Assembly: GCA_051294375.1 (NCBI GenBank)
Contig: CM119264.1
Span: forward strand, 13,722,813 to 13,786,812
Source: Paraspadella gotoi
Lineage: Eukaryota > Animalia > Chaetognatha
Length of the DNA: 64,000 nt
Direction of reading: 5' to 3'
In this document: piece after piece, positions 1 through 62,929 of the stretch
Layout of the letters: each line of letters opens with the position of its first letter
Numbering within the stretch: position 1 is the first letter of the stretch
The notes under the pieces: generated by a model
What the model saw: only the letters and a program-made list of their open reading frames with translations
Told to the model about the DNA's origin: nothing
Databases searched by the model: none
Made by a program: the position numbers and the translations under genes

Positions 1-6
1 GACGTC

Positions 7-3000
7 TTGATTGATAATAAAAGGGAGAAGGATAACGACGTCGATAATAAAGACGAAGAGGATGATAAAGAAGACGTCGTTAACGACGATAAGGGCAAGG
101 ACGAATGCCACGATGTCAGAAATGCTGGACATATCTTCGACGAATTTTCTGAGAGAGATTATTACACTGCGATTAACGAGAATTCACTCGAATTGAAGCA
201 AGATACTCATAAAAGTTCTTGTAACTCGGAGAAAAGAGGCAAAGACGAGGAAAGCCAGGTTAAAGACCGAAAATCACAACCTCTTGGCGTGGAACAGTTC
301 CGACGCTTGGAAGGAAAAGCGGAACCCGTCGAAGTTGAGGAAGAAAAAGAGAAAAGGAAAGATGAGTTCCATCGAGCGAATCTCGGCCTCGCCACCGATT
401 CCTTTGTTGATCCCATTTTTTCCGCCGCGCCCACTTTTGACAGCGACGCGGCTGAGGCCAACGACTCCGACGCCGACGCGTCAACGACAACGACGACGAC
501 AATCACTTCCGGTCGTGACGACGACGCCGAAATCCACTCGGCGCCGGACACCATCGCTTCCGGCACCGAAACCAGCGCCGATTCCATCGAGAATTCGGGT
601 CGGGACGGCGACGGCCTTGGCTGCGGCGTCGGTTCCATTGGCGGACAGAGATATTCCATCCTTTTCATCGCAAAACGACGACGAGTTGAGAGAAATTCTT
701 CTTACAGGAGATCGATTCGGGAAAGAATGGAAGATGATGGAGGAAATGAGGAGGAGGAAGAAGGAGAGGGAGAGAAAGGGGAAAAAGAAGAGGGAGGAAA
801 AAGAGAGGAAAAGGAAGACGGAGGAAATGAGGAGGAAGAAGAAGGAGAGAGGGAGAAAGGGGAAGGAGAAGAGGGAGGGAAAAGGGAGGAAAAGGGAGAC
901 ATTGAAAATGAGGAGGAAGAAGAAAGAGAGGGGGAGAGAGGGGAAGGAGAAGTGGGAGGAATAAGGAAGGAAAAGGGAGACGAAAAAAACGAAAAATATT
1001 CAACTTGTTCCGGGGTTGGGGGAGAGACGAAAAATGTGGCTTTATTAAAAGGAAAAACGGTTGGAAGAGAAAAGGAGTTAGGTGTGGAAGAAAAGGAGGA
1101 AAAAAGAGGAAGAGAAAACGAGAGAAAGAAGAAGAAAAAAGAAAAAGGAGGAACGGAAAACAGAGAAGAGAAATTGAAAGCGGAAAAATATGGCGACGCG
1201 AAGAAAAAAGAAGAAGAGGTGGAGAAAATAAATCGAGAGGCGAAAAGGAAAACAAAGACACTCAAGACTGAAATTCCCTCGACCTTTTCAGCATACTCTT
1301 CGTCGTCGTCGTCGTCGTCGCTGTTGCCTCTGCCATCACCGCCAACGCCATCTCCTGCATCGAATCCGTTTTACTCACCCAAGCGAAAACAAATGCCCCC
1401 GAATGAGAATGGAGAAAGTCGACACAAAAAGGATTCCAACATAAAATTTGAATATAAATTTTTTGAGGCGGAGGAGAAAAGATCCGACGAAAAAAACGAC
1501 GACGACGACGACGACGACAACAGCGACGATGAAATCCACGAATCCGCTGCCCTGACGTCAAATCAATCCGACAAAACCGAACTTGCTTCCTTCGTTACAA
1601 TTTCCGCCAACGAAAACAAAAAATTGAAAGACGCAATCGACCAACTAGCGGGTGATTCAAAGCATAAACTAACGAAGAATGAAAGGAGAAATGAAGACGT
1701 CACATTCGACGCGCCAACAGTTGTCAATCCTCAGATTCACTTTCACTGCTACCCGGTGATTAACCCGCTGATTAACCCGGTGATCCAACCTGGGATTCCA
1801 TGCGCCGCACTCTGTCGAAATCTCTTTCTTCGAGGCCTCCATCCCTTGGACCGACTCCGAGGTTCCGAACGATGGGTCATGCCCGATCACTATCAATATC
1901 GCTGGGGTCGAGAAGGAGGATCAGCGTTCTCGACGGGTCACGATGCCAGGCAAGCGGTTCCTCACAGGATCTTTCAATCTTACAACAATCAGTCAGGCAA
2001 AGGGAGAACTCATTTAGTTTTCAGCCAATCGGACGCAGAACTTTTCCCTCCGGCATCGACGATCGACTCCGGGTCAGGAAAATTCGATTCTGCGCATCAT
2101 TGTAATCGAAGCGTCGACGCCGATAACGACGACGACAAAAAACCAAAATATCAAGAATATAAAAAACAAGAACAAGGAAAACAAAGACAAAAACAACAAG
2201 AAAACTTGAACGGCCAACGGATAGTCGCCAATGACAATGCAATAACTTCCTGGCGCGATTCGACGATACAACGCGTTCGATGGATTCACCCGGCGCCGCG
2301 AACGACAACTCTCGACAATGACGACCAACAGCACCGCAATCTGCAACAACACCATCAACATCAGCAGAACCATCAACGTTATCGTCATGAAAGTCTTTCG
2401 TCTGATCTCTCGCGTCAAAGGGAGGCGAATCTCTGGCAACAATGCAATCGCTTTACCGTGGGACAACGACGACATGAAAACGTCGTAGACCGTTCAAGCG
2501 TCGGCGTTGATGGACAATATCTGCTTTTGGATCGACGATATCATTTTTCAAATTGGCGAAATCGAAGATCGCCGGAGTTTTATCCCAGTATCTCCCCAGA
2601 CGCCGCCGTCCCACGCTCTGCCGCCTGCACTTCGCACGTCGACGCTCCCCCCGCAAACGCCGCCGCTAACGCAGCCCTTGTCGCCGCCTCTCTTCCCTTC
2701 TTTCCCAAAAGCTCCCAAGATAATCCTGACTCCCTTATTTGTTCCCCGTCCGATTTTCGCTTCGCCTGTTCCCGTCGTGATCAGCCACTCTTTCCAAGGA
2801 TCCCATTCAAATCCGTTTACTTCCCCCGTACCCAACTTGAAATGGCTCAACCCCTACCCCCAATCGATGGTCCCTTCTCGAGTCAGCGTTTGGCCTCGAT
2901 CCCACGTTTACCCGCCGACCACAACGCCCCTCCGATGAACACTTTTGGCGACGATCGCGTTCATCCGCGGCGTAGTCACGTCGTCGTTTTCGTCGACGCC

Positions 3001-3045
3001 CACAGATGGCAGAATCGAGATTCGCAGTACGAAATTTTACTTTGA
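7..3045 (+). CDS. Long low-complexity ORF (D/E/K-rich N-half, Q/H/P-rich C-half), no recognisable domain; probably a large exon or single-exon gene
   Basis: 1012 open codons. A 27-aa repeat inside varies at synonymous positions (gat/gac, gag/gaa, aga/agg). The listed start is TTG, so the true start is unknown. The last ~150 codons are uncertain because another frame (2945-3160) also reads as plausible protein. Confidence 0.55.
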   Translation: MIDNKREKDNDVDNKDEEDDKEDVVNDDKGKDECHDVRNAGHIFDEFSERDYYTAINENSLELKQDTHKSSCNSEKRGKDEESQVKDRKSQPLGVEQFRRLEGKAEPVEVEEEKEKRKDEFHRANLGLATDSFVDPIFSAAPTFDSDAAEANDSDADASTTTTTTITSGRDDDAEIHSAPDTIASGTETSADSIENSGRDGDGLGCGVGSIGGQRYSILFIAKRRRVERNSSYRRSIRERMEDDGGNEEEEEGEGEKGEKEEGGKREEKEDGGNEEEEEGEREKGEGEEGGKREEKGDIENEEEEEREGERGEGEVGGIRKEKGDEKNEKYSTCSGVGGETKNVALLKGKTVGREKELGVEEKEEKRGRENERKKKKKEKGGTENREEKLKAEKYGDAKKKEEEVEKINREAKRKTKTLKTEIPSTFSAYSSSSSSSSLLPLPSPPTPSPASNPFYSPKRKQMPPNENGESRHKKDSNIKFEYKFFEAEEKRSDEKNDDDDDDDNSDDEIHESAALTSNQSDKTELASFVTISANENKKLKDAIDQLAGDSKHKLTKNERRNEDVTFDAPTVVNPQIHFHCYPVINPLINPVIQPGIPCAALCRNLFLRGLHPLDRLRGSERWVMPDHYQYRWGREGGSAFSTGHDARQAVPHRIFQSYNNQSGKGRTHLVFSQSDAELFPPASTIDSGSGKFDSAHHCNRSVDADNDDDKKPKYQEYKKQEQGKQRQKQQENLNGQRIVANDNAITSWRDSTIQRVRWIHPAPRTTTLDNDDQQHRNLQQHHQHQQNHQRYRHESLSSDLSRQREANLWQQCNRFTVGQRRHENVVDRSSVGVDGQYLLLDRRYHFSNWRNRRSPEFYPSISPDAAVPRSAACTSHVDAPPANAAANAALVAASLPFFPKSSQDNPDSLICSPSDFRFACSRRDQPLFPRIPFKSVYFPRTQLEMAQPLPPIDGPFSSQRLASIPRLPADHNAPPMNTFGDDRVHPRRSHVVVFVDAHRWQNRDSQYEILL
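736..978 (+). repeat. Three in-frame 81-bp (27-aa) tandem repeats, DGGNEEEEEGEGEKGEKEEGGKREEKE-type
   Basis: Units begin at 736, 817 and 898 (DGGNEEEEE, DGGNEEEEE, DIENEEEEE); the third is more diverged. Confidence 0.9.
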
Positions 3046-3902: not shown

Positions 3903-39191
<35,289 letters not shown>

Positions 39192-45977: not shown

Positions 45978-46070
<93 letters not shown>

Positions 46071-46241
46071 GTAATAATGATAAAAATAATAATAGTATTA
46101 TTAATGATAAGAATAATAATAATTAGGACATGAAAACAAAAAAAATATCGACTTAGTGGGTAATTCCACCACCCTGGTTGTATCTTCGCAATAAAAAAGT
46201 TCAAAAAAGAAAAGTATCTAAGTTTTACTTAATAATAGTCT

Positions 46242-46294
<53 letters not shown>

Positions 46295-46398
46295 AGCGAA
46301 ATGACAGCGAATAAAGGAGAGAAAACCCAGGTATCAATAAACGGACCGAGAGATAACCTTCTTTTCTTGGGGAAAATCCCTAATTTTATTTGGAGGAA

Positions 46399-46448
<50 letters not shown>

Positions 46449-46574
46449 TCCTCTCTCTCTCTCTCTCTCTCTCTCCTCATCTCTCTCGCTGATTTCATTT
46501 CCTTTCTCTCCATACGTTTATTAATGATTCACGCCCATGAGAATCCACAAAAAAAATTATTACGTGTCATTTAA

Positions 46575-47214
46575 GGTCAGGGATCACTCAACCCAAAATT
46601 GTAGCATTCTCAATTTCAAGTATACTAGTACTTCTCTCATATCCTGTAAGAGGTCTTTTATAAAAAAAAATCTGGATTAAAAAAATTAAAAACAGTAAAA
46701 CGAGTTGGACGAACTCCATCATCACATCCCCTTTTTGTGTATTTTGTGGTGAATTTTGAAAAAGTAATGAGTACAGAATTTAACTTTCTTGATGAAGAGA
46801 AGTTGAAAAAAAAGAGTTGCAGCTCAAACCGTTGGACTTATCATAAAGAAAAAAATATCTAGGGCAAGAAAGGAAAGGTGGGGGAGATTCTATGAGTGGG
46901 TTTTTGGAAAAATGGTTTTCGTTTCAAAAATAACAAGGAATTAATGCCAAAAATTGATTAAAATAACCAAATTTTCTATGAAGGAAGGCGAAAATTGAAA
47001 ATATATTTTCACAGAATTGGAGTCCGTCACCTAAAAGTAATTCATGTCAAATTTCATGAGGAACCGCCTTACCGTTTGGGCTGAAACTCTTAAGATAGGT
47101 TTCTTTTATTTTACATAGTAATAAAAAAAGCCAAAAAAAGGGAACGCCTTTGAAAAAATAGTAATGTTAATACATTTTCGCCTATTTATAATTTGAATTA
47201 AGTGATCCCTGACC
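46575..47214. mobile_element. 640-bp non-autonomous DNA transposon (MITE) with TTAA target duplication, Kolobok-like ends
   Basis: TTAA (46571-46574) + GGTCAGGGATCACT ... AGTGATCCCTGACC + TTAA (47215-47218): perfect 14-bp terminal inverted repeats, imperfectly extendable inward; no ORF. TTAA duplication with RR...YY termini fits Kolobok rather than piggyBac (CCC...GGG). Confidence 0.75.
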
Positions 47215-47479
47215 TTAAAGAGAAGGTTTTTCTTACTTAGTTACTTCATTTACCACAAATATCTTAAAATTAGATCTTTTAAAAAGTTCAGCGTTGGATC
47301 GAAGACTTTTACTTAACAAAACAAGTTTTTTTCTGCTGTAATTAAATGCGGGTCATTTCGTCATTTTAAGAAATCGAAAATATTTGAACTAAAACTCGAT
47401 TTTCGACTTTGACATTAAAAAATTTTCACTTGAAAACGACGCTTTTTAAATTTAATGTTCTGAACCTACATCTGACAGC

Positions 47480-48979
47480 ATGGAAAGGCGTATATTTGAC
47501 AGATTGCTGCGAGATTTTGCCGACCATCTAGCCCCGCCTGCAGATTGGGCGAGATGCGCAAAAAATAATCTTGAAAGTCTCGTCAACGTTTTGTCGCAAC
47601 ATTCGACGTACGAATTAGATCGACACGTGATCGTGGGTGGCGTCGCCAAAGGCACGTCGACCAATCTCAAGGCCGACATCGACGCTGTCATCTATTACAA
47701 TGATGAATATAAACAGTATGATCGAAAAGTCGTTTTGGCCGAATGGAACCAATGCTTAGTTCTCCACACATCTCTCACAAACGAAGATGTTCGACGAACC
47801 GACTATCTACTGTCATTTCAATACAAAGGCATCAAGATGGACATTGTGGCCATCCGAAACAACGTACATGGAAATCAACCGTTTCCGGAGTTTGAACAAA
47901 TGATGAATGATTTCCAAGAAGTGAGGGCTTCACGCGATCCTTCGGAAGCGGCCAAAGAGTTGACTTTGTCGACTCAGAGTGTCAAGTGGATGAGTACGAA
48001 GCACCCTGACGTCGTGCTTTTCGTTCGTTTAGCAAAGTTCTGGATGCAGACCGTTCTCTTTGACGAAACGGTGAACGGTATGTCGTACATTTTCGAGAAT
48101 CTTGCCATCAAGGCCATGTTCACTGTCGAAGATGATGGGGATGCCTCTCCGAGCTTCACAAAAGCTCTCGAACGTTTTCTCTCCCATGTCAGAAACATGG
48201 ATTCGTTAAACGTTCATTTCAACTCATCCAACGGAGCGTGGTATGAAAATAACAAGATCCCCGAAGGAATACGGAGTCAAATTCCTCTTCTCTTGGATCC
48301 AATCAACCCTTACAACAACCTTCTCGATGTTTACAAAAGTGTTAAGGCAAAATTTTTTAAAATTTTTAGCGATTATGCGGAAGAAACGCTAAAAATTTTA
48401 AATGAAATAAGCAACAATGGATATGTCGATAGAAGCGACGTAGCGAAGCTATTTTTACCCCGAATTCGTCCTGGGGAATTGGGCGAGTGTCCCGAGTTGG
48501 TGGAAATTTCGACAGAAATCGTCGAACGAAAACCCGACGATGCAGAAGCCGCGTTGCCACGTCGACTAAAATCGCGGGTTTCGGTTCCAGATTCCAAATT
48601 GCTTCACTTTCATCGTCTTTTGGAAACGCTGATGCTTAACGTCGCAGCGGAAGTGAGGCTGGATAGCTGGAGTCGAAAGTTTTCCAGTCCTAATGAAATC
48701 GCTGAAAGAACAGAGACTTTTTTGGAGAAAGAGTCGAAAACCAAATGTATAATGATAACCAACTTGCTAGAGAAACCTTTTGGGGTTGTGGATTCTACAT
48801 TCCGATCGGTCGGGATAAAGAATTACGATGCTTCTTCAAGATGGAAATGCTTGAAACTGGTGGAGGCCAGGATTCGACGCATGAAGTTAGAGCAAAAGAA
48901 GGCGGAACAATTTGAACAGTTTCAATGGGATCAGTTGCACGGGAACGTTTCTTGTATCGATTCCTGCACTATTAGTTGA
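47480..48979 (+). CDS. OAS: 2'-5'-oligoadenylate synthetase-like nucleotidyltransferase (pol-beta superfamily NTase + OAS1_C-like domain) with C-terminal extension; coding region intronless
   Basis: VGGVAKGTSTNLKADIDAV fits hG[GS]x9-13Dh[DE]h (D66, D68; compare OAS1 GGSSGKGTTLRGRSDADLV); third acid in KMD121IV; FVRLAKFW ~ LIRLVKHW; SYIFENLAI ~ QYALELLTV; LLLDPINPYNNL ~ VILDPADPTGNL. A possible acceptor (ctgacAG) lies just before the ATG; aataaa at ~49142. The last ~80 aa may be in the wrong frame. Confidence 0.9.
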   Translation: MERRIFDRLLRDFADHLAPPADWARCAKNNLESLVNVLSQHSTYELDRHVIVGGVAKGTSTNLKADIDAVIYYNDEYKQYDRKVVLAEWNQCLVLHTSLTNEDVRRTDYLLSFQYKGIKMDIVAIRNNVHGNQPFPEFEQMMNDFQEVRASRDPSEAAKELTLSTQSVKWMSTKHPDVVLFVRLAKFWMQTVLFDETVNGMSYIFENLAIKAMFTVEDDGDASPSFTKALERFLSHVRNMDSLNVHFNSSNGAWYENNKIPEGIRSQIPLLLDPINPYNNLLDVYKSVKAKFFKIFSDYAEETLKILNEISNNGYVDRSDVAKLFLPRIRPGELGECPELVEISTEIVERKPDDAEAALPRRLKSRVSVPDSKLLHFHRLLETLMLNVAAEVRLDSWSRKFSSPNEIAERTETFLEKESKTKCIMITNLLEKPFGVVDSTFRSVGIKNYDASSRWKCLKLVEARIRRMKLEQKKAEQFEQFQWDQLHGNVSCIDSCTIS

Positions 48980-49630
48980 TTTAGACAAAATATTGTTAAA
49001 TATATACTTATGGTGAATGTTGGTTTAAGTTGTGTTAAAATTCGTTTACAAAAAAAAACATACCTTTTACCCAATAGATATTGTGACTTGAATTGTGCCT
49101 GAATTATTATTCAGCCTACTGATATAATACTTTACCTTATTAATAAATATATTATATTTCCGTGATCCACCTCTCTCTCTGTCTCTCTCTCTCTCTCTCA
49201 CACACACCACACACACACACGCACAAACAAACAAATATTCGCTGAACAGTGACCTCTCGATGTTTGCAAAACTATTTTTACATTTTTAAAAACACATGCT
49301 CATTAATCAATCAATTAAATAATCAATCAAATTAATCAGTCAAATAATCAATCAATCAATTGATCTATTAGTTTATCAGTCAGTGACCCAACGAAAAGAC
49401 CTAAAACAAATAAGTTTGAGCAATTAGTGACGGATCTGATCAGATAATTATTTAATCAATTAATCAATCAATTAATTAATCAACGTTGGTTTTATCCTCG
49501 TCGTTGTTGCCATCAACGTCGTCGTTGTTTTTGTCGTGGTTAGTGACTAGTGACAAGACGAAAAGACCAAAAACCAAAAAGTTTGTGCAAACAAATTAAA
49601 TTTAAAAATTAATTAATGTGTATTAAATTA

Positions 49631-50903
49631 TAAATTAAATTATAAATTATATAAATATAATTTGGACAGTGTTACCCCTAAAAAAGCAGCACTAGGTGTA
49701 TTTATTAGCCAATTAATAAGATATGCAAGAATATGTTCGACGTTTATAGATTTCCTTCAAGAGCTATAAATTAAGCAAAAAACTCAAAGTCAGGGTTATA
49801 TATTTAAGGACTTAAAGAAAAATGGGAATTAAATTTTCAATAATTATAAGGAGCTAAATAAAAAAATATAATGTTACTGATGTTAATCTATTTTCAAAAA
49901 AGATTATACATGATAGTTCCAAATAAAAATAATAAGGAAAAGATAACCAAAATAAACCACTAAATAATAATTATAATAATAACATCAACAATATTATTTA
50001 AATAACTTATTTAACTTATTTAACTCTCTGATTTAATTTATTTTTTAACTTTTACCAATTAACTTAATGTTAACTTTACATTAACATACCCTTAATTATT
50101 AACTTATTATTAAACTAATTATTTAACTTATTTTATTTATTTACAAATTACAAATTATTACAAAACCTGAATAAAATTTCTCTAAAATAATAAATGCTGT
50201 GATGCCAGGGCTTTGGTCTGTTCAGATAAACATTCAAGATATACATTGTTAAAACTATAAGATAAGCAACAATGAAGGATCACCATTTGGTGATGGCTCA
50301 CCTATACCTGGATATTGGGATTAAAGAGCCGAAATCCATGAAGGGTATAGGTTCCCAACTGATGACCTTCCCATTGTATAAATAATAAAATTAAAAATAT
50401 TCAAAAGAAATAATTTAAAAAGTAGAATAAAGAAAAAATATTATTTAAAAATATATTCATGACATAAAGGTGCCCCTATAGACCTTTCCCCGGTATGTAT
50501 CCCTATCAGAACATACAATTCTACATGGTAGTCTTATCCCTATTAGTAAAAAAAATCATATATAACTTTGATCACCCCTCAAAAAATTAATCCATTCCCA
50601 CCCCTTTCTTGTCAGCCTCTTAGATATTATATTTTCATTAATGACTTTCTAACAGAAATGATGTGTAATATCTATTAGAAAACTAGGTACAGATAGTAAT
50701 CTAACCTTGTGTTGTAATAGATGCTCCCTCTATTTCCAGAAGACAACACGACTTCCCCTTCCCAAATTGAATTATTAATAAATAAAAACATTTTTAAGAA
50801 AGAAAGCAATATATATTGATTAAATAATAAGATTAAATACTAAATCCTTCATAAAATATAAAAATAGAAAATAGTGAAACAAGTAATTTGCAAATTTTCA
50901 TTA
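49631..50903. other. 1.27-kb AT-rich segment present in copy 1 and absent from copy 2
   Basis: Copy 2 reads gtgtattaaATTAattagttattg continuously (58127-58150); copy 1 has these flanks separated, with a 4-bp ATTA overlap. Confidence 0.8.
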
Positions 50904-51146
50904 ATTAGTTATTGTTTTAACTAATTAATTAATAAATTAATGTTTTAAAGTAATTAATTAATTAATTACCGCTAATGATCGTGGGCAATATCCGACATTG
51001 TTTGTTCAAACTTGTTTTGAGAAATCGTAATCTACTTTGACGTAAGATGACTTTTAACCTTGGATGAGTTACCTCATTTATCATATGAGCAATAGGTTCC
51101 TTTCCATAGGAAGGAAAAAAGATTAGAACAACAATGATATCCTTAC

Positions 51147-51420
51147 TCCTGTTCCATTCGGATTCCGCGGCACGAATTTTATCGGCGACTTTCCTTTCCC
51201 ATTCCCATTTCCCTTTCCCATCGTTTTTTTTTGTTCTCGTTCCGTTTCAGCATTCGCCTCGATATATCTTCGAATTACCAAGAATGAACATTCTGACCCT
51301 CACATCTTTCTCTTGCGCGACCCTTGACCTATTCGTTCTTATCTTGTTTATTTCCGATGACCTTTCCAAACGAGCGGTCAAAATCGAAAGGGCGTTGGAA
51401 ATCGCGAAATCATTCGGTGA
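51147..51420 (-). CDS. Possible exon with a charged helical peptide (...WEWERKVADKIRAAESEWNR); re-read at ~58385-58650
   Basis: Strong a|GTaagg donor on the minus strand; upstream frame is broken by indels and the acceptor is unclear. Confidence 0.3.
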
Positions 51421-54400
51421 CATTCAATCCTTGAGGATGCGAACGATACTACATTAATAGTAGTACGCATTTGTATTGCCATTATGTATCGCTATCCCGT
51501 CCCGTTATTTCCGCTTTTCATCGCGACAATGACAATGACAATGACAATGAAGGGTATCGCTATCGGGTCCCGTTATCTCCGCTTTTCATCGCGACAATGA
51601 AGCCAGAAAAGTTACAACCAAAATGAAAATCAAGTTTGTCCGATTTATTTCTCCCGGTGACGCAAAGTTTAGAGTGAAAACTGAAACTGAAAAGAAAATA
51701 ACAAACTGTTGGATTTCCCAGCTGGAGAGGACTCCGAGACGACGAACGACGACGACGACGACGACGAATGTGACATCGAAGACTAGCAAAAGAATCTAAT
51801 GAATTTTTTTTTTCATATTGATCAGCCTATCATTATAATTTTAGTTACGGGGACAAAAAACAAATAAAGTAAATTATAATACCCAAGATACTTTTAAAGT
51901 TGAATGGAAGAAAAGGTGTGACGAAAAAGCGTCTTACGAAAGTATTTGAAAAAAAATACTAATGTTTGATTTGGAAGGAAATTTACTTACGTTTTAGTCG
52001 TTCGTTTCATCGACACCCGACTTTCAATGCCGCGGCAGATGCAGTCTTCGGGTGCAGTTCAACGCTGCTTTTTTCCTGCTGTTTGCAATCTCAGGTGCCA
52101 AGAGTTTTTGGAAAAAAAACAAAGCTCGATCAACAACCCTTTTTCCCTTTCTGTCGAAGAACCGAAATACGATTTTAACTTCGAATTGCTTTTTTTTAAT
52201 TGCTTCTTTTTTAATTTAAAAACAAATTATATTTCGTACTAAATTTACGTCCTTCTTTCGTCATTTCTAAACCTATAAAATCGCTCGAGGTGAACTTTTA
52301 AACTTTAATGATTTATACCTAGAAATAAACTAATAAAACGATTATCTGATCTTCGTTGATACTCAGGACGCGAACGCCCAACCGTGTTTTTGTAATTTTT
52401 TTTATTATATAAAAGGAAACAGTCCACTGATCCGGGGTCGATCAACTCCCATACTTGGTCAACACTCTTTTCTGATACATTAATCTTTTCCGTAAATCAC
52501 CGTAAATAAAATTTCTCCAGTTTTACCCGCATTGGATTAAGTGTCCGCACGACTAAACAGCTGACGTCATATTTTTTGTTGGGCGGTTTTTAAAATCAAA
52601 GAATAACGCTTTGTTGTGACTCTTGGACTAAAGCGAAATCTGTTATTTCGCTCAAAAAACACTTTATAAAAAAATATGAGTTTTACAACAATTCTACTTT
52701 TTTTTACGTTTAGTTTGTAAAATATGCACATAGTAAATCCCTTTAATTTTCAATTTTTGCACGAGTTTTTGGTTAATTTGTAAATGATCCTTAAAAACTA
52801 ATTTCGCTTTTTTTTAAGTTAAAGCAACGCGATCGTTTCCCCAAATAAAAACACTTAAAACGCGTCCTTTCATTTTGTCCTTGACGTCGTCACCCTCCCG
52901 ACCCAAGTTCTGATTCAACCCAAACGCCCTTTCCTAATCACAATTTAACCTACTTTTTGAAAAAAAAGATTTGATCAGGAAAACAAATTAAAAATTTATT
53001 TGAGATGATTCTCCTCAGCATTAAAACACTTATTACTGGTTCAGAATATAAAGCATATCTATATCAATTTTTGTTTAAAAAATCGTTTACGGGATTTAGT
53101 ATTGAAATCCAAAAAGGAACTTGTAAGTACGCATTACTTCTCACTACCCATCAATTAACTATATCATATTTTGAGCCCAAACCACCTGACTTAAAGTGCG
53201 ACAGCTTGCCAAACTTATATCTACGACGACGACGACGACGAAGACGACGACGACGAAGACACGGATTTTGTTTACATCCTCCCCTACTCTTCCTCATCGG
53301 CTGCTCCTTTCCCTCGGCTCCTCCTCCTCTTCTACTCCCTCCCCCTCCTCCTTTCTACTCCTCCTTCCCCCTCCTCCTCATTCTTGTATCTCTTTCTCTC
53401 GATGGCGATTCGTCTTCTGTTCGACCGAGATTCCAGATCCGCCCCCGAAAGGGGGAAAAAAAAGAAAGAAAAAAAAAAAAAACAAACGACGGATAAAAAT
53501 GAAGAGAAATAAAAGAAAGAAACGAATAAAAGAAAATAAATTAAAAATTTCTAAATTTATCCAGAAAAAAAAACTTTCAAAAATTTACTATTTGTATTAA
53601 GAAATTTTAATATATTTTCATTTTAAAAGTGAAAATCCTTTAAAAAAATGAAAATCCGGTTGACTCGAATGGGACTTTGGAGGCGGCGTTCTTAATTTTG
53701 TCGACATCTTTAAGAGATTCACTATCTTCACAATTCACGAGCAAAGGGTATTTTTGGCTCAATGATCTGATTTTCAAAACTGTGAGTTTATCTTCGAATT
53801 AATGCTTTCGATGGAAAAGGTAAGATTTTTAAGTCTCTATCGCTTCTATCCACTTTTTAATTTTTGATTTGTGATTTGAGATGAGACACACATCATTCAT
53901 CAGAGAAAGCAATTTTTAGACTGTTTGTTGCTTGTTGCCCATTTAATGTTATGCTATTAAATATTTGTTATTTTTATGAAACTTGTTTTATTTTCAGGAT
54001 CCTGTTCACCGATGTTTCAGTGAGGATAAAAAATTTACATCCTTTTTAATATTTATCTAGCGACAATAAGAAATCAACATAATACAATATAAAAAGCCAA
54101 GACATCAGCGAAATGTTTAAAATAATTTAACTCTCGACCGCTTTTTAGTTTTTTCAAAGTTAATTTTTCCGATGAGAATTTTCCGTCGTCATCGCGTGTG
54201 GCTTCTAAAAAATCTTTTTCCCCCGAAGTTTTTTAAAAAGAGTATTTTATCGTTATTTTTTATTCATTCCTTCTTTCAGCTTTGTTTTAAAATTATCATA
54301 AATAGCCCGTGTCTATAAACCGAAGAATAAAAAGATATGAGTGAAAAAAAATTCTTATCACCAGAAAAAGCTCAAGAAGAAAAATCCAAAAATTCGACAA

Positions 54401-55651
54401 AATCCAGATGTAGATTTTTGTTACTTATTACAATCATCCTCAATTGTTGTTCTCCCGAGCTGCCAGCGGCCGATCACCGGCAAAACACCGCCGCTCACTG
54501 CTCATCAACGGGGGAAGACGTCCCTCCGACTCTACCGTCCAAATCGTGCGCCCCCCCACCCCTCATCCATCCGCCACCAGTTCGAACAATCGGTCTAATC
54601 GCTTCCAAGTCTTCCGCCTCGATCCTCGTCCAACTTTCCTTCCAGGCCGCACAAAAAAGAAAAAATGACTTTCGATCCCGATTTTGCGCCAACAACTTTT
54701 GCCGGATTCTCTTGCCGACTTTTGGAATCTTTCGCCGACGGGGCCGAACCCTCCGTCCCCGCGGAACCACGACCTGCTCTTTGCCCCCCGAATCGCCCCT
54801 GAGATCTTCGCGAAGGTCGCCCAAGGGACGGCCTACGATCCGCTCTTGCCTCCCAGTTCGCCGCTCAGGTCTCCACGACGGTCTCCTCGATCGCCTTCGG
54901 ACCCACCTTCTCCTCCGTCCAATCTCGAGGCGGACTGTCCCTCTCTCCTCCTCCCTCCACCCTCCGTCCTCTTCCTCCTCTTCCTCTTCCTCCGCTTTCG
55001 TCCGGACTTCGTACAAGAAACTCTTCCGCGTCAAACCCCCGCCCTCTTTTTCTTTTGGCAAAAGAAAACAAACGAACAAAACAAACGTTGATCGGAGGGA
55101 AGAAACGGACAAACGAACGGAATAAAGAACGGAGTGACGAAACGGATTAACGAACGGATTAACGAATGAAAAGGCGAACAATGTCGTCGAAAGAACCAAA
55201 ACCGGAACTTCAGTCAAACAACGGAGAACTGGACGAAGCGCGCGGAAAGGAACGACCGGAAGTGACGGCGCGAGAACGCCACTCGTTGAGGAGGCGCGAA
55301 AAGGTCGCTCCGCCGCGCTCGTTGTCTCGGCGGCGGCTGGCGTCGGCGGCTGCGAAGGCGTTCTCCCATCAAATCTTCGGCGTCCTTCGTCTCCCACGTT
55401 CCGCCAGAGTTTCTCCCACATCGATTTTTTCAAAACAACAACGAGCGATTTGTAAAACAAATAAGAGGCCGAAGGAGGCGGAAGGAGATGACGAGGGAAG
55501 AAGGGGAAAAAGGGGAAGCAGCTCGAAAAAAGGACGTTTTTGTTTGAAAATGGGCGCCGCGATTCTTCGGGGGAAAAAGTCATTCCACCTCTAATTCCGC
55601 TCNNNNNNNNNNNNNNNNNNNNNNNNNCCCACACACACAAGAGAGAGATCC

Positions 55652-57497
55652 GATTTCCAGAGTGAGGGATTCATGCGACCTTCGGAGCGGGCCCTAAAGA
55701 GTTGACTTTGTCGACTCAGAGTGTCAGAAGTGGCGAGTACGAAGCAACGCCTGACGTCGTGCTTTTCCGTTCGTTTAGCAAAGTTCTCGGAGCAGACCCG
55801 TTCTCTTTGACGAAACGCCGTGAACGGAACTGTGCGGTAATTTTCGAGAATCCTTGCCATCAAGGGCCATGTTCACTAGGCCGGAACAGGTTAAAACTAG
55901 AAGTCTCATCAAATATAATAGGTAAACGTGACTGTTCAGAGAATATGAAAATAAGAAATTATTTTGAAAATTATTCTCATTAATAAGCGCAGCGGAAGCC
56001 TTTAAAGATTTTTTTTACTGATAACCGTCTAAACAATTCTTTTTTCCCGAATTATTACAATTTTTGTTTCTGAGTAGGATTCTGATAGAGCTTTAAAAGT
56101 TAAAATAAAGGTTATTAATAGCAACTTTTTTAAATTTTTCTCTTGTTTTATCTGATCAACAATTTTAAGAAAACCTATAAACATTCAGCCAATGATCGCA
56201 TGATGATGACTGATTTTTAACTTTTTTCTTGTTTTGTAACCAATTTCTTGGTCAAAATTTTAAAAAAATTGTAGTAACTAACTTTCATGTTAACTTTCAA
56301 GCTTTTCATAAGAATCCGTCTCTCACCACACCACCATCACTCTCTCTCTTAAAAAAATTTTTTGTCATCTGTGTTATATACTATAAATTATTTAGAAACA
56401 CAACGCTTCAGTGCAACAACACGCAATGAACCTCACATTCAAAAGGTCTGCTTGAAAGAATACGATGTTAGTAATGGAAGGAGAAAAGAATTTTTCTTTG
56501 ACGCAGAACTTAGAAGTTATAAAAAGTGTTCAACTTTTTGGCCCCGCCTTAATGTTCACCTGTCCGCAAGAATGATGGGGATGCTCTTCCGACGTTTCAC
56601 AAGCTTCGAACGATTTTCTCTCCCTATATGTCCAGAAAAGCTCATCGGCACTTCGTCCTAACGTCTCATCCCTTCAACCTCCACATCCCCGGACGCACCG
56701 TGAGAGTTAACAAAAACTACCAGAATATGTACACCACCACAATGGAAGAGAGAGGAAAGAGAGATATCACATACACTCTATATCACTATTGGAGTCCAAT
56801 AACGCGCATACAACAATCTTCTCAATGTTTACAAAATGTTAAGGCAAAATTTATTAAAATTTTTTAGCGATTATGCGGAAGAAACGCTAAAAATTTTAAA
56901 ATGAAATAAGCAACAATGGATATGTCGATAGAAGCGACGTAGCGAAGCTATTTTTACGCGGCCGAATTCGTCGTAGGCGAATTGGGCGAGTGTCCCGAGT
57001 TGGTGGAAATTTCGACAGAAAACCGAAACGAAAACGACACGAGATAGAACCACGAACCACAAACGCGGTGCCACGTCGCCAACTCGCGGGTTTTGGATGC
57101 CAGGATTCCAAATTGCTTCACTTTAATCGTCTTTTGGAAACGCTGATGCTTAACGTCGCAGCGGAAGTGAGGCTGGATAGCTGGAGTCGAAAGTTTTCCA
57201 GTCCTAATGAAATCGCTAAAAGAACAGAGACTTTTTTGGAGAAAGAGTCAATGGAAAACCAAATGTATAATGATAACCCACTTGCTAGAGAAACCTTTTG
57301 GGGTTGTGGATTCTACATTCCGATCGGTCGGGATAAAGAATTACGATGCTCTTCAAGATGAAATGCTTGAAACTGTGGGACGGCCAGGATTCGACGCATG
57401 AAGTTAGAGCAAAGAGAGGCGGAACAATTTGAACAGGTTTCAATGGGATCAGTTGCACGGGAACGTTTCTTGTATCGATTCCTGCACTATTAGTTGA
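55652..57497 (+). pseudogene. Second, 5'-incomplete copy or allele of the OAS-like gene, interrupted by an insertion
   Basis: Colinear with 47909-48979; very noisy near the gap; carries a 675-bp insertion after ...gccatgttcac. Confidence 0.75.
55877..56551. mobile_element. 675-bp hAT-like non-autonomous insertion within the OAS-like coding sequence
   Basis: ATGTTCAC occurs once in the intact gene (48116-48123) but flanks both sides here (55869-55876, 56552-56559). The 8-bp duplication fits the hAT nTnnnnAn pattern; termini TAGGCCGG... and (reverse complement) TAAGGCGG... are an imperfect inverted repeat. Confidence 0.75.
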
Positions 57498-58972
57498 TTT
57501 AGACAAAATATTGTTAAATATATACTTATGGTGAATGTTGGTTTAAGTGTGTTAAAATTCGTTTACAAAAAAAAAAATACCTTTTACCCAATAGATATTG
57601 TGACTTGAATTGTGCCTGAATTATTATTCAGCTACTGATATAATACTTTACCTTATTAATAATATATTTTATTTCCGTGATCCACCTCTCTCTCTGTCTC
57701 TCTCTCTCTCTCTCACAACACCACACACACACACGCACAAACAAACAAATATTCGCTGACAGTGACCCTCGATGTTTGCAAAACTATTTTTCATTTTTAA
57801 AAACACATGCGCATTAATCAATCAATTAAATATCAATCAAATTAATCAGTCAAATAATAATCAATCAATTGATCTATTAGTTTATAGTCAGTGACCCAAC
57901 GAAAAGACCTAAAACAAATAAGTTTGAGCAATTAGTGACGGATCTGATCAGATAATTATTTAATCAATTAATCAATCAATTAATTAATCAACGTTGGTTT
58001 ATCCTCGGTCGTTGTTGCCAGTCGGCCATCAACGTCGTCGTTGTTTTTGTCGTGGTTAGTGACATGACGAAAAGACCAAAAAAACCAAAAAGTTTGTACA
58101 AACAATTAATTTAATAATTAATTAATGTGTATTAAATTAATTAGTTATTGTTTTAACTAATTAATTAATAAATTAATGTTTTAAGTAATTAATTAATTAA
58201 TTACCGCTAATGATCGTGGGCAATATCCGACATTGTTTGTTCAAACTTGTTTTGAGAAATCGTAATCTACTTTGACGTAAAGATGACTTTTAACCTTGGA
58301 TGAGTTACCTCATTTATCATATGAGCAATAGGTTCCTTTCCATAGGAAGGAAAAAAGATTAGAACAACAATGATATCCTTACTCCTGTTCCATTCGGATT
58401 CCGCGGCACGAATTTTATCGGCGACTTTCCTTTCCCATTCCCATTTCCCTTTCCCATCGTTTTTTTTTTGTTCTCGGTTCCGTTTCAGCATTCGCCTCGA
58501 TATATCTTCGAATTACCAGAATGAACATTCTGACCCTCACATCTTTCTCCTTGCGCGACCCTTGACCTATTCGTTCTTATCTTGTTTATTCCCGATGACC
58601 TTTCCAAAACGAGCGGTCAAAATCGAAAGGGCGTTGGAATCGCGAAATCATTCGGTGACATTCAATCCTTGAGGATGCGACGATACTACATTAATAGTAG
58701 TACGCATTTGTATTTGCCATTTGTATCGCTATCCCGTCCCGTTATTTCCGCTTTTCATCGCGACAATGACAATGACAATGACAATGAAGGGTATCGCTAT
58801 CGGGTCCCGTTATCTCCGCTTTTCATCGCGACAATGACAGCCAGAAAAGTTACAACCAAAATGAAATCAAGTTTGTCCGATTTATTTCTCCCGGTGACGC
58901 AAAGTTTAGAGTGAAAACTGAAACTGAAAGAAAAATAACAAACTGTTGGGATTTCCCAGCTGGAGAGGACTC

Positions 58973-59014
<42 letters not shown>

Positions 59015-61743
59015 TGTGACATCGAAGACTTAGCAAAAGAATCTAATGAATTTTTTTTTTCATATTGATCAGCCTATCATATATAAATTTTAGTTACGGG
59101 GACAAAAAACAAATAAAGTAAATTATAATACCCAAAGATACTTTTAAAGTTGAATGGAAGAAAAGGTGTGACGAAAAAGCGTCTTACGAAAGTATTTGAA
59201 AAAAAAATACTAATGTTTGATTTGGAAGGAAATTTACTTACGTTTTAGTCGTTCGTTTCATCGACACCCGACTTTCAATGCCGCGGCAGATGCAGTCTCG
59301 GGTGCAGCTTCCAACGCTGCTTTTTTCCTGCTGTTTGCAATCTCAGGTGCCAAGAGTTTTTGGAAAAAAACAAAGCTCGATCAACACCTTTTTCCCTTTC
59401 TGTCGAAGGACCGAAATTACGATTTTAACTTCCGAATTGCTTTTTTTTAATTGCTTCTTTTTTAATTTAAAAACAAATTATATTTCGTACTAATTTACGT
59501 CCTTCTTTCGTCATTTCTAAACCTATAAAATCGCTCGAGGTGAACTTTTAAACTTTAATGATTTATTACCTAGAAATAACTAATAAAACGATTATCTGAT
59601 CTTCGTTGATACTCAAGACGCCGAACGCCCAACCGTGTTTTTGTAATTTTTTTTATTATATAAAAGGAAACAGTCCACTGATCCGGGGTCGATCAAATCT
59701 CCCATACTTGGTCAACACTCTTTTTCTGATACAATTAATCTTTTCCGTAAATCACCGTAATTAAAATTTCTCCAGTTTTACCGCCATTGGATTAAGTGTC
59801 CGCACGACTAAACAGCTGACGTCATTATTTTTTGTTGCGGTTTTTTTAAATCAAAGAATAACGCTTTGTTGTGACTCTTGGACTAAAGCGAAATCTGTTA
59901 TTTCGGCTCAAAAAACACTTTATAAAAAAATATGAGTTTTACAACAATTCTACTTTTTTTTACGTTTAGTTTGTAAAATATGTCACATAGTTTAATCCCT
60001 TTAATTTTCAATTTTTGCACGAGTTTTGGTTAATTTGGTAAATGATTCTTAAAAACTAATTTCGCTTTTTTTTAAGTTAAATATTTTACAACCGATCGTT
60101 TCCCCAAATAAAAACACTTAAAACGCGTCCTTCATTTTGTCCTTGACGTCGTCACCCTCCAGACCCAAGTTTCTGATTCAACCCCAAACGCCCTTTCCTA
60201 ATCACAATTTAACCTACTTTTGAAAAAAAAGATTTGATCAGGAAAACAAATTAAAAATTTATTTGAGATGATTCTCCTCAGCATTAAAACACTTATTACT
60301 GGTTTTCAGAATATAAAGCATATCTATATCAAATTTTTGTTTAAAAAATCCGTTACGGATTTAGTATTGAAATCCAAAAAGGAACTTGTAAGTACGCAGT
60401 TACTTCTCACTACCCATCAATTAACTATATCATATTTTGAGCCCAAACCACCTGACTTAAAGTGCGACAGCTTGCCAAACTTTTTTTTTTCTGTGGAGAC
60501 TACGACGACGACGACGACGAAGACGACGACGACGAAGACACGGATCTTTGTTTACATCCTCCCCCTACTCTTCCTCATCGGCTGCTCCTTTCCCTCCCGC
60601 TCCTCCTCCTCTTCTATCTCCTCCCCCTCCTCCTTTCTACTCCTCCTTCCCCCTCCTCCTCATTCTTGTATCTCTTTCTCTCGTGGCGATTCGGTCTTCT
60701 GTTCGACCGAGATTCCAGATCCGCCCCCCGAAAGGGGGAAAAAAAAGAAAGAAAAAAAAAAAAAAAACAAACGACGGGATAAAAATGAAGAGAAATAAAA
60801 GAAAGAAACGAATAAAAGAAATAAATTAAAAATTTCTAAATTTATCCAGAAAAAAAAACTTTCAAAATTTACTTATTTGTATTAAGAAATTTTAATATAT
60901 TTTCATTTTAAAAGTGAAAATCCTTTAAAAAAGTGAAAATCCGGTTGACTCGAATGGGACTTTGGAGGCGGCGTTCTTAATTTTGTCGACATCTTTAAGA
61001 GATTCACTTTCTTCACAATTCACGAGCAAAGGGTATTTTTGGCTCAATGATCAGATTTTCAAACTGTGAGTTTATCTTAAAATTATGCTTTCGAATGAAA
61101 AGGTAGATTTTAAGTCTCTATCGCTTCTATCCACTTTTTAAGTTTTTGATTTGTGATTTTGAGATGAGACAACATCATTCATCAGAGAAAGCAATTTTAG
61201 GCTGTTTGTTGCTTGTTGCCCATTTAATGTTATGCTATTTAAATATTTGTTATTTTATGAAACTTGTTTTATTTCAGGATCCTGTTCACCGAGTGTTCAG
61301 TGAGGATAAAAAATTTACATCCTTTTTATATTTATCTAGCGACAATAAGAAATCAACATAATACAATATAAAAAGCCAAGACATCAGCGAAATGTTTAAA
61401 TAATTTACTCTCGACCGCTTTTTAGTTTTTTCAAAGTTAATTTTTCCGATGAGAATTTTCCGTCGTCATCGCGTGTGGCTTCTAAAAAATCTTTTTCCCC
61501 CGAAGTTTTTTTTAAAATAGATTTTATTTTATCGTTATTTTTATTTCATTCCTTCTTTCAGCTTTGTTTTAAATTATCATAAATAGCCCGTGGTCTATAA
61601 ACCGAAGATATAAAAAGATATGAGTGAAAAAAAAATTCTTATCACCAGAAAAAGCTCAAGAAGAAAATCCAAAAATTCGACCAAATCCAGATGTAGATTT
61701 TTGTTACTTATTACAATCATCCTCAATTGTTGTTCTCCCGCAG

Positions 61744-62929
61744 CTGCCAGCGCCGATCACCGCCAAACACCGCCGCTCACTGCTCATCAACGGGGGAGAC
61801 GTCCCTCCGACTCTACCGTCCAAAATCGCCCGGCCCACCCCTCATCCATCCGCCACCTCGAACAATCGGTCTAATCAGCCTCCAAGTCTTCCGCCTCGAT
61901 CCTCGTCCAACTTTCCTTCCAGGCGCCAAAAAAGAAAAAAAAATGACTTTCGATCCGATTTTGCGCCAACAACTTTTGCCGGATTCTCTGCCGACTTTGG
62001 ATCTTTCGCCGACGGGGTCCGACCCTCCGTCCCCGCGGAACCACGACCCTCTTTTGCCCCCCGAATCGCCCCTGAGATCTTCGCGAAGGTCGCCCAGGAC
62101 GGCCTACGATCCGCTCTTGCCTCCCAGTTCGCCGCTCAGGTCTCCACGACGGTCTCCTCGATCGCCTTCGGACCCTCTTCTCCTCCCGTCCAATCTCGAG
62201 GCGGACTGTCCCCTTCTCCTCCTCCCTCCACCCTCCTCCTCTTCCTCCTCTTCCTCTTCCTCCGCTTTCGTCCGGACTTCGTACAAGAAACTCTTCCGCG
62301 TCAAACCCCCGCCCTCTTTTTCTTTTGGCAAAAAGAAACAAACGAACAAACAAACGTTGATCGGAGGGAAGAACGGACAAACGAACGGAATAAAGAACGG
62401 AGTGACGAACGGATTAACGAACGGATTAACGAATGAAAAGGCGAACAATGTCGTCGAAAGAACCAAAACCGGAACTTCAGTCAAAAACGGAGAACTGGAC
62501 GAAGCCCGCGGAAAGGAACGACCGGAAGTGACGCCGAGAACGCCACTCGTTGAGGAGGCGCGAAAATGTCGCTCCGCCGCGTCGTTGTCTGCGGCGGCGG
62601 CTGCGTCGGCGGCTGCGAAGGCGTCTCCCATCAAATCTTCGGCGTCCTTCGTCTCCCACGTTCCGCCAGAGTTTCTCCACATCGATTTTTCAAAACAAAC
62701 AACGAGCGAGATTTGTAAACAAATAAAGGCCAAAGGGGCGGAAGGAGATGACGAGGGAAAAGGGGGAAAAGGGGAAGCAGCTCGAAAAAAGGACGTTTTG
62801 TTTGAAATGGGCGGCGATTCTTCGGGGGAAAAGTCATCCACCTCTAATTCCGCTCGCCCTCTCGCGAACGCCGATAAAACGAAACGAAAACAAAAGACAA
62901 AGGGAGAAAGGCATTCCATGTTTGTCGAG
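61744..62929 (+). CDS. Large S/P/K-rich disordered exon of a gene continuing beyond the window; partial re-read at ~54460-55602
   Basis: tctcccgcAG acceptor and gag|GTaagc donor; CpG-rich coding-like composition with PPTLPSK and PPSLPPR; at least one frameshift is needed and the correct frame is uncertain. Confidence 0.45.

Follow-up and report, generated by a model that had tools for sequence, protein, structure and literature searches.

This study focused on a 64,000-nt stretch of the genome of the chaetognath Paraspadella gotoi (GenBank assembly GCA_051294375.1, contig CM119264.1, positions 13,722,813 to 13,786,812, forward strand), which is referred to here as the window and is numbered from its first letter. 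It carries, at 47480-48979, a gene for a protein related to the 2'-5'-oligoadenylate synthases (OAS), called the OAS-like protein in what follows. The features of this gene are:

47480..48979, plus strand: complete, single-exon coding sequence (CDS) of the OAS-like protein, 499 aa plus stop, to which relatives align from Met1.
47480..48415, plus strand: catalytic core, residues 1-312, with a Pol-beta-type nucleotidyltransferase (NTase) lobe and a helical OAS1_C-type lobe (Pfam matches under cut-off, family profile, AlphaFold 2 (AF2) model, Foldseek).
47636..47683, plus strand: G53-G54...K57-G-T-S...D66-I-D68, the hG[GS] loop and the first two metal-binding aspartates (family and pig OAS1 alignments).
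47840..47842, plus strand: D121, the third catalytic aspartate, equivalent to D147 of pig OAS1 (both alignments).
48026..48043, plus strand: R183-L-A-K186-F-W188 motif, in which K186 corresponds to K212 of pig OAS1.
48290..48322, plus strand: L271-LDPINPYNN-L281 motif (match to the bacterial enzyme CdnC, family and pig OAS1 alignments).
48416..48964, plus strand: C-terminal extension, residues 313-495, mostly helical, with low-to-moderate model confidence (alignment, AF2, profile comparison).
48965..48976, plus strand: C496-T-I-S499, a C-terminal CaaX box and predicted farnesylation signal (direct reading; enrichment in relatives).
49142..49147, plus strand: AATAAA, a candidate polyadenylation signal 163 nt 3' of the stop codon.

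The open reading frame (ORF) is a real, intact single-exon gene. Its 499 codons are uninterrupted, an in-frame stop lies eight codons 5' of the ATG (the stop-to-stop frame begins at 47456), and A at -3 together with G at +4 gives the ATG a good context. Since relatives can be aligned from Met1 to beyond residue 310, no 5' coding exon is missing; there may be an intron in the 5' untranslated region. The GC content of the gene is 44%, compared with 26–32% in its flanks and roughly 35% in the surroundings, and no genomic poly(A) tract follows the AATAAA at 49142.

An earlier description of this DNA, referred to here as the original prediction, had reported an OAS-type NTase with an intact catalytic triad, encoded in one uninterrupted frame with motifs at G53-G54, K57-G58-T59, D66/D68/D121, R183-LAKF-W188 and L271-LDPINPYNN-L281, and all of these motifs were found. 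In a 75-sequence family alignment (A1, consisting of the OAS-like protein and 74 relatives), residues G53, K57, D66, D68, D121, R183, K186, W188, E206, P274, N276, P277 and N280 are invariant or at least 90% conserved, and at least 90% conservation also holds for G54, completing with G53, D66, D68 and D121 the residues of a Pol-beta-type active site. When aligned with pig OAS1, G53-G54 corresponds to G61-S62, K57 to K65, D66/D68/D121 to D74/D76/D147, K186 to K212 and S202-Y203 to Q228-Y229. The serine usual in the loop (S62 of pig OAS1, and a serine in CdnC) is G54 here, which still fits the hG[GS] rule. In OAS1 structures, the lysine equivalent to K186 contacts the triphosphate. With the triad, this lysine and the hG[GS] loop all conserved, the catalytic machinery of the OAS-like protein is complete. 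The wording of the L271-LDPINPYNN-L281 motif is nearer to 'IIDPVNPVNNV' of CdnC than to 'ILDPADPTGNV' of OAS1.

A word-indexed protein search gave zero matches, both for the protein and for the family alignment, and relatives were recovered by an exhaustive HMMER search of 1.84 billion representatives, which returned 254 sequences with a top identity of 39% over ~300 residues. Those that carry a species name are all from invertebrate animals: Rotaria sp. Silwood2, Holothuria leucospilota (annotated as '2'-5'-oligoadenylate synthase-like protein 2'), Tigriopus kingsejongensis and Orchesella dallaii (annotated as '2'-5'-oligoadenylate synthetase 1 domain-containing protein'). The closest relative is encoded on a metagenomic contig of 18.7 kb, where gene calls are few and short, and another on a contig of 2.1 Mb; the contexts of both look eukaryotic. 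Some of the arthropod relatives are multi-unit proteins of 970–1074 aa with two to three matched stretches (e.g., P0019 of Tigriopus, 1074 aa), and two multi-unit proteins of Orchesella dallaii are encoded on one contig, CAXLJM020000161.1 (L008), indicating that duplication of the unit has also occurred outside vertebrate OAS2 and OAS3.

At the family level, the A1 profile matches human OAS2 at E 2e-62 and pig and human OAS1 at 3e-37 to 5e-36 (the 3e-37 match to OAS1 spanning residues 9-293), followed by weaker matches to CdnC (1e-27) and to OASL and OAS3 (~1e-20). The Pfam domain OAS1_C is found in 64 of the 75 family members (E up to 0.01), and 28 of the 75 also touch SMODS. Single relatives vary, the Holothuria protein matching OAS1 first and CdnC second, and the closest relative matching nothing. 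A structure predicted by AlphaFold from the single sequence was unusable (predicted local distance difference test score, pLDDT, 34), and AF2 supplied with the A1 alignment gave a mean pLDDT of 81.7, with values above 90 over residues 1-330. A Foldseek search with this model returned CdnC first (E 2.6e-10, template modelling (TM) score 0.66) and then OAS1 (E 1.3e-8, TM 0.59–0.63), so the model shows the two-lobed OAS fold, with CdnC a marginally better match to it than OAS1. Further down, NF45/NF90 and Utp22 were among the weaker fold matches. An identity as poly(A) polymerase, terminal uridylyltransferase or NF45/DZF protein, which the original prediction had named as one outcome that would overturn it, was rejected because these families gave isolated weak matches only. 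The family alignment, the OAS profile matches, OAS1_C, the predicted fold and the alignment with pig OAS1 all bear out the assignment as an OAS-type NTase, and the profile and Foldseek matches agree with its membership of the superfamily that also includes cGAS and the bacterial cGAS/DncV-like nucleotidyltransferases (CD-NTases).

A neighbour-joining tree of 281 core columns, which included pig OAS1, both domains of human OAS2 and CdnC, grouped the OAS-like protein with P0001 and P0003 at 94% bootstrap. When rooted on CdnC, vertebrate OAS1 and OAS2 are nested among invertebrate sequences, and the split 'vertebrate OAS + CdnC' appeared in 9 of 100 bootstraps. The whole OAS superfamily has been placed inside clade C of the bacterial CD-NTases (Culbertson and Levin, PMC10732462), and a CdnC-like signal in a divergent protein is consistent with such trees; in that scheme the OAS-like protein is an OAS-superfamily CD-NTase, of the group nested within bacterial clade C. 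The scheme published in PNAS in 2023 distinguishes OASa, which is coupled to RNase L and found in jawed vertebrates, from OASb, which has a patchy distribution among unikonts and lacks that coupling, and from OASc (PMC10400998); in this scheme the OAS-like protein fits best among the non-vertebrate enzymes of the OASb type. By sequence and by fold it stands about midway between bacterial CdnC and vertebrate OAS1.

The C-terminal part of the protein is less typical. At least 49 of the 75 relatives share a C-terminal domain of ~135 residues with the motifs LFxPQP ... W ... HED.DVT..IP ... ISF (alignment A3; relatives P0001-P0120), which showed no recurrent Pfam match and, by sequence, no relative among solved structures. 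Residues 313-499 of the OAS-like protein keep the start of this domain (LFLPRIRP) but not its profile (hhalign probability 0.3%), and its hallmark motifs are lost. The protein ends instead in CTIS, which directly precedes the stop codon and so stands at the true C terminus. Under the established CaaX rules a final serine points to farnesylation, and the lipid on CTIS is accordingly predicted from the sequence to be farnesyl rather than geranylgeranyl. CaaX-type ends occur in 5 of 190 family sequences, namely CTIS itself and those of P0033 (CVIL), P0066 (CVMA), P0075 (CILL) and P0142 (CSII). The expectation from the internal frequency of the pattern is 0.24 (Poisson P about 6e-6), a figure to be read with two reservations that count against our interpretation: the pattern was defined post hoc, and three of the four CaaX-bearing relatives fall in one clade, leaving ~3 independent lineages with the OAS-like protein included. 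The recurrence of CaaX boxes in the invertebrate family parallels the prenylated p46 isoform of human OAS1, which ends in CTIL (PMC8357416, PMC7612834). CTIL is necessary and sufficient for prenylation of p46, by geranylgeranylation (PMC8357416), the prenylated cysteine is required for activity against SARS-CoV-2 (PMC7612834), and membrane targeting is needed for the antiviral activity of p46 (PMC8357416, PMC7612834).

Taken as a whole, these observations are best explained by a functional, single-exon gene of the OAS superfamily, of the non-vertebrate type, whose product makes signalling oligonucleotides and is farnesylated at CTIS, and whose lack of introns is common to its branch; we regard this as probable. 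The enzyme would bind two nucleoside triphosphates (NTPs), most likely ATP, and join them without a template into short oligonucleotides. Like the products measured for the OAS of sponges and protostomes, those of this enzyme would be linear 2'-5'-oligoadenylates, possibly also 3'-5'-oligoadenylates, acting as a diffusible signal to a receptor other than RNase L. Farnesylation of CTIS would tether the enzyme to endomembranes on their cytosolic side, in the way that CTIL does for p46. Its activity may be constitutive or triggered by a ligand or partner other than double-stranded RNA (dsRNA), given that the basic dsRNA residues of OAS1 are not conserved.

Several further points weigh against this explanation. 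The gene is known here from genomic DNA, and the tree was built by a distance method with CdnC as its single bacterial outgroup. Judged by its sequence, the OAS-like protein is divergent when taken singly. Pfam NTP_transf_2 (residues 43-88) reaches 17.9 bits against a cut-off of 21, and OAS1_C (PF10421, residues 169-282) 17.1 bits against 19.9; SMODS (PF18144) and Mab21 (PF03281) gave no match at E up to 1. The sole sequence match among all solved structures is CdnC of E. coli MS115-1 (E 3.6e-8, residues 22-286), OAS and cGAS being absent from the matches of this single query at E up to 1. A match to the 'oligonucleotide cyclase' model of PADLOC, at E 2.9e-11, shows similarity only. A second profile (A2), restricted to the 12 closest sequences, matches CdnC (9e-16) and OAS1 (1e-14) about equally well, and this leaves room for a cyclic product. 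Residues R194 and R198 of pig OAS1, which are basic dsRNA contacts, are V169 and S173 here, unlike in a classical OASa enzyme. The acceptor-nucleotide residues of pig OAS1 (listed in PMC6307210), S186/T187/T190/Q193, are likewise replaced, by E161/L162/S165/S168. With neither set conserved, dsRNA activation and strict 2'-specificity should not be assumed; sponge OAS is known to make both 2-5A (2'-5'-oligoadenylates) and 3-5A (3'-5'-oligoadenylates) without dsRNA (PMC6307210).

Some of these points could also be taken to mean that the protein is a CdnC-like, eukaryotic CD-NTase of clade C type, making a cyclic oligonucleotide (e.g., cyclic tri-AMP) for a dedicated effector. Its best single-sequence matches are CdnC and the PADLOC and NCBIfam cyclase models for the cyclic oligonucleotide-based antiphage signalling system (CBASS), CdnC is top in Foldseek, the DPxNPxNN motif resembles that of CdnC, the acceptor and dsRNA residues of OAS1 are not conserved, and OAS is nested in bacterial clade C, whose characterised members make cAAA (PMC10732462). 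We nevertheless consider it unlikely, as OAS2 and OAS1 rank above CdnC at the family level, OAS1_C is the commonest Pfam match, SMODS is not matched, and the NCBIfam model CBASS_cyclase_b (NF041117) scores 24.3 bits against a cut-off of 200, far from the level expected of a CBASS member. A Pfam scan of the upstream flank, covering those ORFs of 40 aa or more that are not of low complexity over most of 8 kb, returned no match, and within it no HORMA, TRIP13 or nuclease partner, as in a CBASS operon, nor any other candidate effector was recognised. The scan of bacterial genomes described below produced no confirmed relative either, and the invertebrate OAS enzymes assayed to date yield linear oligomers (PMC6307210).

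A protein that is no active signalling enzyme also seems improbable, whether as an unexpressed or decaying copy or as a pseudo-enzyme that binds nucleic acid or nucleotides in the manner of OASL, NF45/NF90 or MAB21. The restriction of the evidence to genomic DNA, the lost hallmark motifs of the C-terminal domain, a broken version of the gene 8 kb away and the presence of NF45/NF90 and Utp22 among the weaker fold matches are all in keeping with it. On the other hand, a frame of 499 codons has stayed open in surroundings of roughly 35% GC, every catalytic residue that pseudo-enzymes typically lose is kept, the CaaX box stands exactly at the end of the frame, and matches to DZF and poly(A) polymerase families are isolated and weak among the relatives. 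A bolder reading, which we think unlikely, would be that of a farnesylated, membrane-anchored animal enzyme between CdnC and OAS, with a product other than linear 2-5A (cyclic or of mixed linkage), a trigger other than dsRNA and an undiscovered receptor, lipid anchoring having evolved repeatedly in the OAS family. If true, it would represent an animal counterpart of the clade C CBASS module, re-wired for endomembrane surveillance.

The absence of introns had been taken in the original prediction to suggest retroposition or horizontal acquisition, an idea that equally intronless relatives would remove, and such relatives exist. The Rotaria relative has 1320 nt for 439 aa and the Holothuria relative 1113 nt for 370 aa, each in a single exon, and two metagenomic relatives on eukaryote-like contigs are single ORFs; the two-unit Orchesella gene has introns. 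With intronless members in a rotifer, a sea cucumber and two further eukaryotic contigs, an intron-free CDS is a common state of the branch, and speaks for a trait shared within it rather than for recent retroposition or transfer. The contrary view is that the gene arrived recently, either by retroposition, which would make it a processed copy of a parent gene with introns, or horizontally from a bacterial or viral donor. It draws on the intron-free coding region, the GC content of the gene above that of its flanks and the CdnC-like sequence signal. This view appears to us very improbable. Besides the intronless relatives, neither a poly(A) tract nor a target-site duplication, as expected of a processed retrocopy, was seen at the 3' end of the gene, a higher GC content in coding than in flanking DNA is ordinary, and the top relative is only 39% identical and lies on a eukaryote-like contig, the closest relatives of known provenance all having eukaryotic contexts. 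Motif-seeded scans of 185,579 bacterial and archaeal genomes (GTDB; built on the 12 closest sequences) and of IMG/VR viral contigs returned motif matches, none of which was confirmed as a relative. Even the best viral fold matches were weak (Hyperionvirus 5e-6, squirrelpox OAS 7e-4), and sigma-70 promoter and terminator signals are not in excess around the gene.

Among known systems, the OAS-like protein comes nearest to the non-vertebrate OAS (OASb, PMC10400998; the OAS superfamily, PMC10732462; and the enzymes of sponge, cnidarian, mollusc, brachiopod, springtail and hemichordate, PMC6307210). It shares with them the two-lobed core of NTase and OAS1_C-type domains, the catalytic triad, a patchy occurrence in invertebrates with no RNase L partner, and named relatives annotated as OAS-like. 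It differs in being at most 39% identical to anything among the 1.84 billion representatives, in falling below Pfam thresholds when taken singly, and in having a helical tail and CaaX box in place of the C-terminal domain of its relatives. From vertebrate OAS1 (pig 1PX5 and 4RWN, human 4IG8; p46), with which it has in common the fold (TM about 0.6), the catalytic residues and a CaaX box (CTIS vs. CTIL), it is separated by ~15% identity in the structural alignment, by the lack of conservation of dsRNA-contact and acceptor residues, by its single exon and by a predicted lipid that is farnesyl and not geranylgeranyl. Interferon is not known outside vertebrates. RNase L would be expected in jawed vertebrates only (PMC10400998, PMC6307210), in agreement with the statement in the original prediction that it is not known from invertebrates. 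The type III CBASS enzyme CdnC of E. coli MS115-1 (6P80), which belongs to clade C of the bacterial CD-NTases, is the best single-sequence and fold match and shares the GxxAKGT, RLAK[FY]W and DPxNPxNN motifs, but the OAS-like gene lies in a eukaryotic context with no HORMA, TRIP13 or NucC partners recognised in the scanned flank, its product has ~190 extra C-terminal residues and a CBASS cyclase score far under the cut-off, and similarity at the family level is greater to OAS. The eukaryotic eSMODS and cGLR/Mab21 CD-NTases (PMC10732462) have the same superfamily membership and the same logic of a nucleotide second-messenger synthase; they differ in their bacterial clade D origin and in matching Pfam SMODS or Mab21, neither of which the OAS-like protein matches.

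The original prediction overstated the novelty of the gene, as active OAS from sponges to protostomes and OASb uncoupled from RNase L have already been published. Within innate immunity, non-vertebrate OAS are a recognised but unsolved component: those of sponges and protostomes are active enzymes, and their receptor is not RNase L. The gene described here adds a very divergent, apparently intact example. It is through its CaaX box that human OAS1 p46 is effective against viruses replicating on membranes. Were prenylation confirmed in the OAS-like protein and in the relatives with CaaX boxes, the OAS family would have come to membrane targeting repeatedly, which is a modest point.

The broken version of the gene mentioned above lies downstream, and comprises the following features:

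55652..57503, plus strand: second, broken copy of the OAS-like gene, from codon ~143 to the stop (tblastn), with many 1-2-nt indels, starting after the N gap at 55603-55627.
55880..56570, no strand assigned: insertion of ~690 bp inside the second copy, flanked by repeated ATGTTCAC (comparison with copy 1).

By tblastn, the match of the second copy covers residues ~143 to 499 and retains the ...SCIDSCTIS end. It carries 37 indels of 1-2 nt in ~900 nt, and its substitutions amount to 3.9% in the coding part compared with 0.3–1.2% in the flanks. In non-coding sequence, 3 substitutions and 22 single-base indels per 1095 nt separate the two copies, and such a preponderance of indels is the signature of unpolished long-read sequence. 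The window has three gaps of 25 N, at 21310-21334, 26219-26243 and 55603-55627, and self-comparison showed that each is accompanied by a direct repeat, the first copy ending at the gap and the second starting right after it (19462-21309 and 21335-23214; 22016-26216 and 26244-30447; about 47903-55602 and 55652-62855). The repeats are 93–97% identical and differ mainly by single-base indels, and the 5' truncation of copy 2 coincides with an N gap, where a new contig would begin. These repeats look like contig ends or haplotigs that were left un-merged, and as false duplications they would make up ~14 kb of the window. The second copy is probably one such un-merged contig end, or the other allele, and not a paralogue; it could be a real recent tandem duplication. 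Its treatment as a tandem paralogue or pseudogene was dropped because all three N gaps share the same direct-repeat pattern. Genome scans may take from this locus the caution that intronlessness alone is no evidence of transfer, and that 'tandem copies' beside N gaps can be artefacts.

One mobile element-like feature was recognised upstream of the gene:

46571..47218, no strand assigned: element of ~650 bp resembling a miniature inverted-repeat transposable element (MITE), with perfect 17-nt terminal inverted repeats (TTAAGGTCAGGGATCAC) starting TTAA (0 matches expected by chance).

Between the element and the OAS-like ATG downstream lie 261 nt, and no other copy is present in the window. Microsatellites of the (CT)n and (AAT)n types are abundant (e.g., 45980-46070, 46240-46480 and 49170-49220), and with these and the MITE-like element the context of the OAS-like gene is clearly eukaryotic. 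The ratio of observed to expected CpG is ~1.2–1.6 per 4-kb bin and 1.40 over the whole window, at 41% GC, as in a genome without CpG depletion. Scans of the window with Rfam and for tRNA genes found nothing, and among ten long ORFs elsewhere in the window Pfam gave one sub-threshold match to a proline-rich family and nothing meaningful. The neighbouring gene with ~28 exons described in the original prediction was not confirmed by these scans. Long open frames on the plus strand, at 1-3042, 9276-10340, 31724-32875, 33058-34359 and 37671-39188, encode low-complexity protein that is acidic or rich in Gln or in Ser/Pro and that no Pfam family matches, and the block at 32–34 kb reaches 59% GC. Disordered proteins may be encoded here, with these frames as large exons of a single gene or of several, possibly the multi-exon neighbour just mentioned.

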